Positions 5,527 to 63,605 are shown, counted from the stretch's first letter. The stretch is DNA of 64,000 nucleotides from Oculina patagonica (GCF_052425735.1 NC_135767.1:18786001-18850000); one strand, 5' to 3'. The notes: a model not told the origin generated them from the sequence alone. Numbers and translations: made by a program.

Positions 5527-7864
5527 TCAGCGAATAAATATATTCCCGTGAGGATTTTCGACAGTTTTCAGGCCATTGTCTTTGCCTGTGCCACAAGGGT
5601 CATGTGCTGGTTTTACCTCTCCTGTGCAACCTTCAAAGTGATAATACTGTGTACCACGCACGCTTCCAAAGAACGCCGGCACGCAGAAACCTGCACCTCT
5701 GAACTCTGAAGGTGGCGGCACATCTGAACACGTGTCAGTCACACGCTTAACGATCTTACACGTGACGTTCCCATCCTGCCATTCAACCAAACTTCCTGTG
5801 TTCGGTGAACAAACCAACCAATTGTTGATGTTGCTTTTGATGAGGATCTCCTTTCCAAAGTGCTTCCACAGGGAAAATTCCATGGCGTTGTAGTCGGTCT
5901 CATTCAGTGGTGGGATAGTAGAGACCGGAACATTTACTTTAGCAGGGGCTGGCCAGTTAGGTCTCGGAGTAACCGCGTTTGCGCCAGTCCAGAATTGTTC
6001 GTAGTCAGTAAACGTGTAACTCCATACTAATGTCCAGCCTCCTCCATCAGTTTCCATCTCACAGTAAACCTTGAACGCGTTGGTATGAGATCCACCATCT
6101 GGATCGATCCGATATACACCACTGGGGAAGAAAGCTGAGGACAGGGCCTTACATGAGGGAACAGCCATGTCTTGTGTTGAGCCTACGTGACAAAAGAAAG
6201 AAGCTGTATGGAAATGATGAATTTAAATTTCACAAGAGACCTTCAGTTTCGGTTTTGGAAATTTAACATGGATTAAAGTACTAAGTGCTGCAAACTTCAG
6301 TACTGCATATTCCATTTGACTTGCAATACGATATGGCTTATAAGGATTAAAGTCGTAGTGGTGAACAAATTTAAATGAAATATCATATTATTTTACCTTC
6401 TCTGAAATTACTATTTTATAAACCAAAACATAATGATAAATTGTGATCGTTGCATAACTTCTTTATTCATTGCTTCATAACATCCAGGATATTATACACT
6501 CAGTAACACTCCTCAAAAGCTGTTTATTTTACCCAGGATCATTACCCTTGTTTTATATACACCTTGTTTTTAAGGGATCTTAAGGCCATTTTTTAATAAC
6601 ATTGTTCGCATTTCTGTGAAATATTAAATCGTAGGTTAAAGTAAGAAGCATTTAAAGTAAAAAAAAATAACTTTTCTGATCGCGAAACTTACCTGGCTTT
6701 GGATTCACCTGCGAAAAGACAAAAAAAAACATTTTACTACTGTAACAACTGTTTGCAAATGATTCAAATTTGTCGCTCGTCTACCTACATTTGTTACAAA
6801 AAAGTCCCTTATTATAGGAAATTAACGCTTCATGAAATTAACGCGAATTTCAAAAATTCGCGTTAATTTAAGTCGCGTTAATTTTTGTTAACGTTAATTT
6901 CCGCGCCATTAATTAAGTGGAGCGTTAATTTCCATGACCTTAATTTCTATTATTTTGGCCCCAATTTCTCGATACAGTCCAGCCGTTCTTGACTCCTAGG
7001 AAAAGACATTATTTCATCAGGGTGAAGGTCTGCTAGTATCACTGAAACTACGAAGAACGCTCGAGGCGGTCAGATTCCTTCCCTTAACCCCTACGTTAAG
7101 GATTATACACCTAGTGGTGATATAAACTTGTTCCTGTTGTCTCAACAAGGGTTTTTTTTATGTGTTCTTCGCGTTAATTTCCTTCATTTTGAAATGTTAC
7201 GCCTCCTTTCGCGTTAATTTCCTTTATTGGAAAGAAATTTTCCTATCAGTTCGCGTTAATTTAAGTCGCGTTAAATTCAAATACCTTAATTAACACAAGC
7301 GTTAATTTCCTATAATAAGGTATAAGCCAATTAAAATATATATTTAAAAAAAAAGACAATAGTGTGAAAATTCCATCCAAATTGAAAATACCACGTAAAA
7401 GTGACGACACAAAATTCTCTGTTTTTTTGTTCTTTCTCTCTTTTAGAATAAAGAAAATCTGACACTTCCAAATGCAATTTAAACTCATTCTGTCTTGGCT
7501 TGTCAATGTTCTTTACCCCTTTTGTATGCAAGAAACAGTGGACTTCACTAAACAAAGATATTACTAAGTAAAATACCTTTTCCACGTGAATTGCTATAGC
7601 TTGTTTAAGAAAGCGCTGTGGATGAGTTTTCCGTGTTTTGTCCAGAAGAGAGCACGTCCTTTGGTCTTTTATGAAATTAGCACTCTTGCAACGTTTGTCT
7701 TTGGTACAGAGCTGCGAACACGAAATTTGTGAATCTGCTCTTTTCACAGAAATAGGAGTTTCATCAAATAAAACAGAGTTTTTCTCGGTGTTAAAGAAAT
7801 TTTCTTGTACTTCTGCTCTTGTGGTGACTGTTTGAAAAAGTAGAAATCCTGTGATGGTCAACAT
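5527..7864 (-). CDS. Gene 2: secreted PAN/Apple + fibrinogen-related-like protein; exons 7864-7577, 6708-6693, 6182-5527
   Basis: Canonical GT-AG junctions in frame (phases 0, 1); microexon VNPKPG; SGVYRIDPDGG..FKVYCEMETDGGGWTLVW motif; ends PHGNIFIR*. Closest paralog is gene 3. Confidence 0.88.
6807..7320. mobile_element. TIR element in the gene 2 intron with many internal CGCGTTAATTT motifs
   Basis: CCTTATTATAGGAAATTAACGCTT / AAGCGTTAATTTCCTATAATAAGG; absent from the homologous, shorter intron of gene 3. Confidence 0.75.
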
Positions 7865-61793: not shown

Positions 61794-63605
61794 ATGTTGC
61801 TGGCTACAGTTGTATTTATGTTGTCCTTGGCGGCAAAGATAAAAACAGACGAACATGGTGTTTTCTTCAAAATTGAAGAAAACTCTTTTCTTTTTCATGA
61901 AAACGCTTTTTGGAATGGAAAGGCAGACTCCTTAATGTCTTGTTCACAGATGTGTGCGAGGCAAGATGCTTGTAAAAGTGCAAATTTTATAGCAAGCCAA
62001 GGGACCTGCTCACTTCTCACTGATATTCAAACAAAGCAGTCAAAAAGGCTTTTAAAACAAGACGGTTCTTTTTATTTGGAAAAGGTTTGTTATCACTTAA
62101 TTTCTTGTCAGATCTCTATATGTAGGCCACTACATTTGACTTAATGCCTGATATTTGACAACTGTCTGGCATTAATTAAAACGAACTTAAAAGTGTCCTC
62201 GCTATTTCCATGCTTCTTAAAAAAATGTATTGACTCTCATGTAGCTTTCCCCAATTCAGGAATATGATTAATTAAATTAACTGTATAAAAACGTTTTCGT
62301 GTTTTGGTATTGACCTGTCGTAGCATAAAGCTTATATTAAAGCGCTAAACGTAAACACTTCTGCAAGAGTAATTTTTTTTTCATCCTAGAAACCAAGGAA
62401 AAGAAATATCAGTGCTCAAAGTTCTCTTTTTCACTGGTTTAAAATTTTTAAATTTTTAAAACACTCTTTTATCACTTTAATTATCGACTTGTCAGTTTTT
62501 TGGTGTTTGTTTCCTTGTATGTCTTCTTTTTTTTTTTGAGGGGGGGGGGATGTCACTTCTCTCTAATATTTATTTCAAGTTTTCCTGAATTAGTATCATT
62601 CATTTTAAAGGTTGTCTCTCCTGGAATTCCAAATTCACCGGGTAAGTAATGTTACTTTTTAGTTAAGAAGTTTAGGGGTCGATAGTACTTAATTTTGGTA
62701 TAATAACGCTTTGGATATTATTAAGCGATAATAACTAATGATAAAAGCACACAAACCAACACCCAATCAATAATTTGTCTCTGTTGGAAAATTAAAATTG
62801 GTGAGTGGGGTGGTAAATATGGCTGATCTAGTTTATAATTTTAACGATAAAAGGTGTACATTTAGTAACAGTGGTAAAATTGTAAAATATTTCAATATTT
62901 TGGGTCATGTTCATGAAAACCAATGATTAAAAATGTCTTATTCACGTAGGCAACACTCGATTTTCAGCGGTGCCCTCGTGCCAGGCCCTACACAGTCAAT
63001 CTTCTTTTCCTTCCTCGGGTGTTTATTGGATTGATCCTGATGGTGGGACCCAGACAAACGCCTTCAGGGCTTACTGTGATATGGACACTGATGGAGGAGG
63101 TTGGACCCTAGTATATAGCTATACATTCACAAATTATGTTCATTTTCAAGATAACTCGAACGCGATCACACCAAGACCAAATTGGCCAGCAGTCTCTAAA
63201 GTAGATGTTCCCGTCTCGACAACTCCTCCCCTGAACGAAACAGACTACAACGCCATAAACTTCTCGCAGTGGAAACAACTTGGCAGAGAGATCCTGATCA
63301 AAAGCAATATAAACAACTGGCTGATATGCCATCCGGGAACTGGAAGTTTGGTTGATTGGCAGGACGGAAACATCAGCTGTCGTGTTACTAAACACGTGAC
63401 GGATACGTGTAACGGAACTGCGCCGCCTTGGGACTTTAAATCGAGTAATGCCTATGGGCCGAGATTCAGGACTTCTGCTAATTACTATTATTTTGATGGA
63501 TACACAAGGAAAAACTGGCCAACTCATGATCCTTGTGGAAAAAATGCGGGAAATCATGTGAAAAATGTGATTGATCCACATGGGAACATTTTTATCCGAG
63601 CATAA
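61794..63605 (+). CDS. Gene 10: divergent-subfamily PAN/Apple + fibrinogen-related-like protein; exons 61794-62084, 62611-62641, 62950-63605 (upstream exon ends 61660)
   Basis: CAG|ATG, AAG|GT, 31-nt linker exon VVSPGIPNSPG, cacgtag| acceptor; paralog of gene 9. Confidence 0.85.

Follow-up and report, generated by a model that had tools for sequence, protein, structure and literature searches.

A tandem array of genes encoding a PAN domain and a fibrinogen-like C-terminal domain in the coral Oculina patagonica is under positive selection at a limited set of C-terminal codons. This selection is lacking in the PAN exon of the same genes and recurs in a second subfamily and in another genus. The array was found in a window of 64,000 nt (the whole stretch of DNA analyzed, with an N count of 0), which contains nine intact paralogues (g1 to g9) and one shortened copy (g0). 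We consider it probable that the array represents a germline-encoded repertoire of recognition lectins, with loops under positive selection, that was built by duplication and exon reshuffling.

Nine copies of the C-terminal exon were identified by a six-frame motif search and tblastn, one on the minus strand and eight on the plus strand, and all of them have an open frame with a terminal stop codon. Each gene encodes a protein of ~320 aa composed of a signal-like N-terminus, a PAN/Apple domain, a linker of 5-10 residues with its own micro-exon, and a 217-aa C-terminal domain encoded by one exon. On inspection of the sequences, a hydrophobic N-terminus followed by A-E or D-E is visible in these proteins, which are probably secreted. 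Since the reading phases of the PAN and C-terminal exons mismatch, a middle exon was sought. Comparison by tblastx of the introns between these two exons revealed no convincing coding exon; the 16-nt micro-exon was found by pattern search, and the NCBI models then agreed with it. The exon joins likewise agree with NCBI gene models, with splice sites and reading phases checked, and the g1 C-terminal exon is identical (100% match) to the O. patagonica NCBI protein P0001 (LOC144628766). The family is currently annotated only as 'uncharacterized protein'. Many further paralogues occur elsewhere on the same chromosome, which carries 20 or more Oculina members, and in other stony corals. Clustered at 90%, the family comprises at least 1,066 related proteins; all species-named matches belong to stony corals (Scleractinia).

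The single minus-strand gene, g1, starts with an exon that carries the ATG, the signal-like peptide and the PAN/Apple domain (7577-7864; Pfam PAN_1, E 2.9e-10), followed by a 16-nt linker micro-exon (VNPKP plus 1 nt; 6693-6708, in agreement with P0001) and the C-terminal, FReD-like exon including the stop (5527-6182; motif search, tblastn and P0001). Its variable patches lie at 5980-6000 (A), 5932-5952 (B), 5647-5706 (C), 5602-5625 (D) and 5578-5589 (E), also on the minus strand. All other copies are on the plus strand, and the micro-exons of g2 to g7 were located by pattern search. In g2, the PAN exon (17602-17889; tblastn) is followed by the micro-exon at 18225-18240 and the C-terminal exon at 18682-19337 (motif search, tblastn). 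The g3 gene has a PAN exon at 24257-24547 (tblastn), a micro-exon (INSDL) at 24806-24821 and a C-terminal exon at 25155-25807 (motif search) with patches at 25337-25357 (A), 25385-25402 (B), 25628-25687 (C), 25709-25732 (D) and 25745-25756 (E). With GTG at the start of the g3 PAN exon, the start codon comes from a six-codon 5' exon (MTQQIE; 21660-21677; NCBI model P0007). Loss of the start codon in g3, g4 and g6, whose PAN exons start with GTG, was thus rejected, as the upstream six-codon exon provides it.

The PAN, micro- and C-terminal exons occupy 31183-31473, 31793-31808 and 32092-32744 in g4, and 35263-35553, 36903-36918 and 37219-37871 in g5, where HDRC replaces HDPC and Phe replaces Cys166. 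The corresponding exons are found at 42165-42455, 42734-42749 and 43299-43951 in g6, and at 48831-49121 (tblastn, P0005), 49368-49383 and 49909-50564 in g7. Linker exons of 31 nt are present in g8 (58536-58566) and g9 (62611-62641), between the PAN exons at 57851-58141 (tblastn, P0033) and 61794-62084 (tblastn, P0035) and the C-terminal exons at 58765-59435 and 62950-63605, respectively; in g8 the Cys166-Cys185 pair is changed to Tyr/Phe. The truncated member g0 (125-934) retains a PAN exon (125-418) and a micro-exon (919-934) and is without the C-terminal exon. A pseudogene array was rejected, given the nine open frames and the strong purifying selection (omega ~0.08) on ~60% of C-terminal-domain codons.

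The first domain is a clear PAN domain. It matches positions 7-64 of the 76 in PAN_1 (PF00024) with an E-value of 2.9e-10 and a score of 40.3 bits (cut-off, 21.4), and the predicted fold of the exon superposes in Foldseek on the N domains of plasminogen and HGF with an rmsd of 1.6-3 Å over 75-85 residues. The C-terminal domain opens with the fibrinogen A-subdomain motif and its disulfide (C...YCDM.TDGGGWT), with Cys10 and Cys40 invariant in 65 sequences. The match to Fibrinogen_C (PF00147; E 4e-7 to 2e-5) covers profile positions 15-47, about 32 of 221, and a full-length match of ~220 residues including the B and P subdomains was not found. Similarly, COLFI (PF01410) does not extend over its ~233-residue domain: only profile positions 12-70 align, in a stretch akin to the fibrinogen A-subdomain motif. 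Both profile matches are confined to the first 30-60 residues of the domain. Among PDB sequences, tachylectin-5A, FIBCD1, intelectins and fibrinogen were matched in the A-subdomain stretch only; the alignment of the family profile stops near residue 149 of the complete protein and does not pass this subdomain. Past the fibrinogen-like segment no sequence homology to intelectins was detected by phmmer and hmmsearch, which align ~50 residues only.

AlphaFold2 models of the full-length protein and of the domain alone have pLDDT values of 87.9 and 83.5, respectively. The best 50 Foldseek matches are all fibrinogen-related or intelectin domains (probability 0.85-1.0, and at least 0.96 in 49 of the 50), with TM-scores of 0.26-0.47 and an rmsd of 6-14 Å. 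The best of them are the intelectins 5zc0, 7e1e, 4wmq and 6usc (E 1.6e-4 to 1e-3, TMq 0.41-0.47). Judged from these profiles and predicted models, the C-terminal domain is a distant, non-canonical relative of fibrinogen-related and intelectin domains, in which a fibrinogen/intelectin-like core is kept and the C-terminal third is lineage-specific. This third (TDTC...HDPC...GNIFIR) has no sequence counterpart among fibrinogen-related proteins, and the analogy is weak for it because the TM-scores are below 0.5.

The initial annotation had described variable patches on a constant scaffold in the C-terminal domain. This contrast is real: rates differ among codons far more than expected by chance (M0 vs M1a, 2dlnL 324), and eight of the ten fastest sites cluster within one 41-codon stretch (permutation p 0.0009). 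The patch strings were found exactly as quoted after TDY (9/9), before HDPC (9/9) and after HDPC (7/7). The framework blocks, claimed to be nearly invariant, are all present, with small exceptions: DGGGWTLVWSYTFTDY is exact in seven of the nine copies (g6 has TVV and g9 has LVYSYTFTNY), LIKSNINNW in eight, and g5 has HDRC. The largest variable tract, columns 162-182 between TDTC and YYHF, and a smaller one at columns 80-86 had gone unmentioned. The proposed higher conservation of PAN exons and flanks relative to the patches also holds. Among g3-g7, the mean pairwise nucleotide difference is 0.125 in the PAN exon and 0.137 in the C-terminal exon outside variable codons, 0.26 in the 3' flank and 0.355 in the last 200 nt of the intron, reaching 0.42 in externally defined and 0.53 in model-selected variable codons.

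Diversifying selection, suggested in the same annotation together with a site-model check after recombination screening, was supported by all the tests run (site models, controls, gene pairs and simulations). We used our own codon site models on the nine sequences, calibrated by simulation, with one synonymous rate over all sites and single-nucleotide changes only. The 2dlnL equals 42.7 for M1a/M2a, 52.3 for M7/M8 and 40.5 for M8a/M8 (p 1e-9 to 1e-12), with omega of 3-4 in ~8-11% of C-terminal-domain codons. Ten sites have a posterior above 0.95 (columns 69, 82, 167, 172, 176, 182, 192, 194, 202 and 204), although these are naive empirical Bayes values from nine sequences and may be over-confident. 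The PAN exons of these paralogues served as a negative control and contained no class of positively selected codons (LRT 0 and 1.4); branch lengths there were scaled from M0, a shortcut that gives an LRT of 37.9 vs 42.7 on the main set. The signal recurs at the same patches in the g8/g9-type subfamily (LRT 17.2 and 26.2), represented by four Desmophyllum pertusum genes together with g8 and g9 from the window.

The contrast could also reflect neutral drift of unconstrained surface loops on a constrained scaffold. The three quoted patches, taken as contiguous blocks, have NG86 dN/dS values of 0.8-1.3 and a pooled omega of 1.4, none of them significantly higher than 1 if the local synonymous rate is allowed to vary; columns 161-205 taken whole have an omega of 1.08; and the variable tract contains indels and has a lower pLDDT (65-78). 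The earlier expectation of dN/dS above 1 at the patches therefore holds narrowly, as the blocks span 0.8-1.4 and the excess resides in single positions within them (columns 69, 192, 194, 202 and 204), between conserved residues. Nevertheless, M1a loses to M2a in every data set and partition, and the LRT never exceeded 4.3 in 40 simulations under M1a, in which the parameters were recovered. Sites picked blind to the window, solely from 96 outside homologues, have a beta/alpha of 2.16. This pooled test, in which the local synonymous rate may vary, gives less strong support than the site models, with p 0.0066 for the top 20 sites and 0.078 for the top 30. Tree-free comparison of four independent gene pairs gave a dN at the patch sites above the exon dS in 4/4, with ratios of 1.5-3.1. 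Moreover, the divergence of the variable codons among g3-g7 is greater than that of the intron and the 3' flank. We therefore regard neutral loops as improbable and favor positive selection.

Recombination or gene conversion and misalignment both inflate site-model tests, and an omega above 1 might arise as an artefact of gene conversion between paralogues or of misaligned, indel-rich loops. Trees of the PAN exon and of the C-terminal exon reject each other (AU p 0.0015 and 0.004), and this conflict of histories means recombination between paralogues. The position of g7 differs between the two halves of the C-terminal exon, the PHI test gives p 0.036 within g3-g7, and columns 84, 164 and 179-181 are gapped. 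The weak recombination within g3-g7 and the clear recombination between exons could have caused some inflation of the likelihood-ratio tests. In contrast, the PHI test is non-significant across the nine genes (p 0.42) and in g1-g7 (p 0.89), and the signal is kept with segment-specific trees (LRT 9.1, 31.5 and 15.1), with the deliberately wrong PAN-exon topology (LRT 33.7), after removal of the deep copies and of gapped columns (g1-g7, LRT 40.1) and in the tree-free pairs. The PAN exon went through the same duplications and is without a class of omega above 1. Homogenization of the framework by gene conversion, considered as a source of the scaffold/patch contrast, was rejected because framework dS is 0.24-0.69, as compared to a dN of 0.08-0.11. 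An artefactual origin of the signal thus appears slightly less probable still than neutral loops.

Positive selection is also favored over a local mutational hot spot, whether by targeted hypermutation or short-tract templated conversion, that would lift all rates in the patches. Variable columns have a somewhat raised pooled synonymous rate (alpha 1.24-1.49 vs 0.97 elsewhere), yet the nonsynonymous rate still exceeds it by the beta/alpha ratio given above, and in two of the four independent pairs the synonymous difference in the patches is only 0.04 and 0.11 against an exon mean of ~0.25. Fast positions alternate with the invariant F65, P195 and H197-D-P-C, which a regional mutation effect would not produce, so we consider this scenario very improbable.

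The fast codons concentrate around two pairs of cysteines and on both sides of the near-invariant HDPC, which occupies residues 295-298 of P0001. Cysteines 151 and 196 are both present in 56 sequences, both absent in 8 and discordant in 1; the corresponding counts for cysteines 166 and 185 are 13, 49 and 3. We infer disulfides Cys151-Cys196 and Cys166-Cys185 from the sequences; these pairs link only three of the C-terminal patches, with columns 69 and 82-84 outside this linkage. Among the 16 sites with a posterior above 0.8, 13 fall in predicted coil and three at the edge of short predicted strands. Both observations bear only indirectly on the putative single binding face proposed in the initial annotation.

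The ligand pocket of fibrinogen-related lectins and intelectins lies in their C-terminal subdomain. By analogy, the fast loops of the array proteins would form the ligand-contacting surface, and the paralogues would be germline-encoded recognition proteins with differing specificities; surface glycans of microbes or symbionts would be the most likely ligands. Such a repertoire would have arisen through gene duplication, positive selection and the reshuffling of exons. Like diversified invertebrate recognition-lectin arrays, the array consists of tandem members of one gene family, and positive selection is restricted to their recognition domain. The literature searched contained no description of a coral family combining PAN and fibrinogen-like domains, or of its binding, expression or secretion, and for the O. 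patagonica genome only mitochondrial and unrelated work.

Selection may also be real with a non-microbial ligand, such as in allorecognition, in venom-like binding of prey or competitor targets, or in escape from a pathogen factor. The selection signature is silent on its driver, the family looks coral-specific among the species-named matches, and PAN/Apple domains often mediate protein-protein contacts. On the other hand, no toxin fold or membrane anchor is indicated by the sequences, and the closest folds to the predicted models are soluble glycan-binding lectins; we consider such ligands unlikely, while giving them some weight. A little less likely is a broader proposal, in which the array and its paralogues would be coral-specific variable receptors whose loops set acceptance or rejection of microbes, algal symbionts or neighboring colonies, with recombination between PAN and recognition exons adding combinatorial diversity. 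If true, the loop repertoire might decide the microbial, symbiont or colony partners of the coral.

Corals have no adaptive immunity, yet they must discriminate symbionts, commensals and pathogens, and O. patagonica is a model for Vibrio-induced bleaching. To our knowledge, few coral recognition genes have a clear signature of adaptive evolution, Oculina tachylectin-2 being the known example. Under the recognition-lectin reading favored here, the candidate specificity-determining positions are few and defined, and lie around the conserved HDPC core; the family could also supply markers of immune-gene diversity for coral populations.

When compared with known systems, the N-terminal exon resembles the PAN/Apple N-domains of plasminogen and hepatocyte growth factor in its PAN_1 match and superposition, whereas the array proteins carry only one PAN domain, joined to a fibrinogen-like domain and showing no positive selection. 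In Foldseek, both models match best to intelectins (X-type lectins), including Xenopus XEEL (5zc0/4wmo), human intelectin-1 (4wmq/6usc) and lamprey LSVL (7e1e), with E-values of about 1e-4, a probability of 1.0 and TMq reaching 0.47. As in the array domain, a short fibrinogen-like N-terminal stretch is followed by a divergent body; however, sequence similarity is limited to ~50 residues, the intelectin targets are ~60 residues longer, and intelectins are without the PAN domain of the array proteins.

FREPs of Biomphalaria, oysters and mosquitoes, as well as ficolin and tachylectin-5A, are secreted proteins and share with the array a C-terminal recognition domain that opens with ...YCDM.TDGGGWT... 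and its disulfide. Reports on invertebrate FREP-type families describe expansions and hypervariation (PMC4346834, PMC1242226, PMC10875847), and these families are also similar in their large tandem expansion and in the focus of diversity on the recognition domain. In contrast, the array domain matches ~32 of 221 Fibrinogen_C positions with TM-scores below 0.5, and the N-terminal partner is Ig, collagen or a coiled coil in FREPs and ficolins but PAN/Apple in the array genes. Somatic diversification is reported for snail FREPs, while the coral array is likened to them at the germline level only. Within the same coral genus, the putative immune lectin tachylectin-2 of Oculina is likewise highly diverse in amino acids, and site models support positive selection on it (Hayes, Eytan and Hellberg 2010; PMC2880987). 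Tachylectin-2 differs in its beta-propeller fold and in the source of its evidence, which comes from alleles of one locus, in contrast to the tandem paralogues analyzed here.

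In the AT-rich window (GC 0.31-0.42, no Ns), six-frame motif search and tblastn locate a C-terminal coding block of ~217 codons nine times: once on the minus strand (g1, 5527-6182) and eight times on the plus strand (g2-g9, between 18682 and 63605). Each copy has an open frame and a terminal stop codon. Every block is preceded on its 5' side by a ~290-nt exon that codes for a PAN domain after a hydrophobic N-terminus. Since the phases of the two exons disagree (0 at the end of the PAN exon, 1 at the start of the C-terminal exon), a linker was sought, and a conserved micro-exon was found, 16 nt long in g1-g7 and 31 nt in g8 and g9. 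The g1 protein is 100% identical to O. patagonica LOC144628766 in a protein search, and NCBI models match the exon joins inferred here, including the six-codon upstream exon of g3 (MTQQIE, 21660-21677), the source of the start codon in the NCBI model of that gene. The PAN exons of g3, g4 and g6 open with GTG, not ATG. Similar mini-exons lie 5' of g5, g6 and g7 (near 34350, 40365 and 46240, respectively), and none was found upstream of g4. A truncated tenth copy, g0 (125-934, plus strand), has an apparently intact PAN exon (125-418) and a micro-exon (919-934), but no C-terminal exon follows them; the family member after it, g1, is inverted.

Several repeats and tRNA genes lie between these genes. 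Just downstream of g0 there is a 492-bp near-perfect palindrome (1247-1738, 97.6%) bearing a pair of oppositely oriented tRNA-Tyr(GTA) genes (1305-1380, minus; 1605-1680, plus). The 10-kb gap between g1 and g2 holds a 940-bp inverted repeat (10187-11117 and 13056-13995) with arms 97.5% identical and ~1.9 kb apart, which may be a transposon or inversion footprint. A 335-bp inverted repeat (88%; 23355-23690 and 23879-24212) adjoins the 5' side of the g3 PAN exon and may be a MITE-like insertion. The genes of the g1-g7 type are separated from those of the g8/g9 type by an interstitial telomere-like (TTAGGG)n tract (53873-54066), directly followed by ~11 copies of a 65-bp satellite (54075-54815).

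The initial annotation described hypervariable patches on a nearly invariant framework in the C-terminal domain, and all strings quoted there were found in the window. The framework is not exact in every copy: its long motif is identical in seven of the nine and LIKSNINNW in eight, while HDPC is kept in all but g5, which has HDRC. Homogenisation by gene conversion was ruled out as the cause of framework conservation, given framework dS of 0.24-0.69 and dN of 0.08-0.11. The codon alignment of the C-terminal exons contains five variable tracts: A (columns 63-70, after TDY), B (80-86), C (162-182, between TDTC and YYHF), D (190-197, before HDPC) and E (202-205, after HDPCG). Tracts A, D and E had been listed; B was overlooked, as was C, the largest of the five. 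As proposed, the patches vary more than the PAN exon and flanks: among g3-g7, the mean pairwise nucleotide difference is 0.42-0.53 in the variable codons, against 0.125 in the PAN exon, 0.137 in the remainder of the C-terminal exon, 0.355 in the intron and 0.26 in the 3' flank.

Codon likelihoods for the nine C-terminal exons were calculated with our own Goldman-Yang implementation (F3x4 frequencies, every branch length optimised; models M0, M1a, M2a, M7, M8 and M8a). The models with a positively selected class were strongly preferred: M2a (lnL -3780.67) over M1a (-3802.01), with 2dlnL 42.7, p 5e-10 and 8.1% of sites at omega2 4.24, and M8 (-3778.18) over M7 (-3804.34), with 2dlnL 52.3, p 4e-12 and 10.8% of sites at omega 3.27. 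The comparison of M8a (-3798.41) and M8 gave 2dlnL 40.5. Naive empirical-Bayes posteriors under M8 exceeded 0.95 at columns 69, 82, 167, 172, 176, 182, 192, 194, 202 and 204, eight of which fall inside one 41-codon stretch (permutation p 0.0009).

The diversifying selection suggested earlier for this domain is thus supported by both model pairs and by the controls. In 40 simulations from the fitted M1a model, the maximum LRT was 4.3, none exceeded 5.99, and parameters were recovered. No class with omega >1 was found in the PAN exon of the same genes (LRT 0.0 and 1.4; M0 omega 0.34). With deep branches and gaps removed (g1-g7, ungapped columns), the signal stayed at the same sites, with an LRT of 40.1 and omega2 of 4.6. 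Forcing the PAN-exon topology on the C-terminal exons still gave an LRT of 33.7. Our own PHI test was not significant over the nine genes (p 0.42) or over g1-g7 (p 0.89) and gave p 0.036 within g3-g7; the signal was kept with separate trees per segment (LRT 9.1 for columns 1-100, 31.5 for 101-222 and 15.1 for 150-222). As an ascertainment control, the 20 most variable columns were picked from 96 homologues, each <90% identical to any window gene, and one synonymous and one nonsynonymous rate were fitted to these columns in the window genes. This yielded beta/alpha 2.16 (p 0.0066), or omega 2.7 (p 7e-17) with the synonymous rate fixed at its gene-wide value; columns not among the top 30 had omega 0.26-0.27. 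In a tree-free check on four independent pairs, the ratio of dN at the externally picked columns to exon dS was 1.5 for g1/g2, 1.6 for g8/g9, 3.1 for g4/g6 and 2.9 for g3/g5.

The excess holds for single sites and not for the three quoted patches taken as contiguous blocks: their NG86 dN/dS is 0.8-1.3, and their pooled omega, 1.4, is not significant with the local synonymous rate free. Conserved residues, among them the Phe of tract A and the Pro-Thr-His-Asp-Pro-Cys run, are interspersed with the fast positions, so that patches have omega > 1 only per site. Variable columns have a slightly elevated synonymous rate (alpha 1.24-1.49), inconsistently among pairs.

The PAN and C-terminal exon trees of g1-g9 reject each other (AU p 0.0015 and 0.004), which indicates exon-level exchange between paralogues. 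The PAN tree groups g3 with g4 and g6, and g5 with g7, and places g9 on a very short branch. Similar tandem arrays of this gene family occur at two Desmophyllum pertusum loci (L001, 4060-18383, adjoining a homeodomain gene; L002, 12512-24135), with both Cys-pair and Tyr-pair subfamilies present. Four Desmophyllum genes of the g8/g9 type, analyzed together with g8 and g9 and hence not fully independent of the window, gave LRTs of 17.2 (M1a/M2a, p 2e-4) and 26.2 (M7/M8, p 2e-6), with sites of posterior >0.5 in the same tracts A-E.

The N-terminal exon matches Pfam PAN_1 (E 2.9e-10) and, in Foldseek, plasminogen and HGF N domains. In the C-terminal exon, only the first 30-60 residues are covered by matches to Fibrinogen_C and COLFI, and PDB searches, with one sequence or with a profile of 104, align the same short stretch to tachylectin-5A, FIBCD1, intelectins, angiopoietins and fibrinogen chains. 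The AlphaFold2 models have high confidence, at pLDDT 87.9 (full-length g1) and 83.5 (C-terminal domain alone). The top 50 Foldseek matches of this domain are exclusively fibrinogen-related and intelectin domains (probability 0.85-1.0, >=0.96 for 49), with TM-scores of only 0.26-0.47. From the short sequence matches and these low-TM structural ones, we regard the domain as distantly related to the fibrinogen-related/intelectin fold, with a C-terminal third particular to this lineage, and as a canonical member of neither family.

The co-variation of cysteines in 65 family members suggests two disulfides. Cys151 and Cys196, linking TDTC to HDPC, are both present in 56, both absent in eight and discordant in one; for Cys166 and Cys185 the counts are 13, 49 and three. 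Within the window, only g1-g4, g6 and g7 have both cysteines of the latter pair; elsewhere, g8 and g9 included, aromatic pairs replace it. In g5 (37219-37871), which bears the HDRC variant of the nearly invariant HDPC, the frame is open and Phe replaces Cys166, leaving the inferred partner Cys185 unpaired; this copy may be losing function. Of 16 sites with posterior >0.8, 13 fall in predicted coil, and the other three are found where short strands begin or end. Only a few residues separate tracts C, D and E from the four cysteines; if these pair as predicted, the three tracts must be near one another in space. In the topology of the chain they would correspond to the P subdomain, which binds the ligand in fibrinogen-related lectins.

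By analogy, the array is most likely a germline-encoded repertoire of putative secreted recognition proteins. Loops reshaped again and again by positive selection would be displayed on a conserved scaffold and HDPC core, and new copies would arise by tandem duplication with occasional exon exchange. Microbial or symbiont glycans would be the default ligands, as for ficolins, tachylectins, intelectins and invertebrate FREPs; an allorecognition or venom-like role is a possible alternative. Our literature search found no description of a PAN plus fibrinogen-like coral family; within the genus, the nearest precedent is tachylectin-2, which is under positive selection (PMC2880987). The array is built from an uncharacterised family that combines PAN with a divergent fibrinogen/intelectin-like domain, and in behaviour it resembles other diversified invertebrate lectin arrays.
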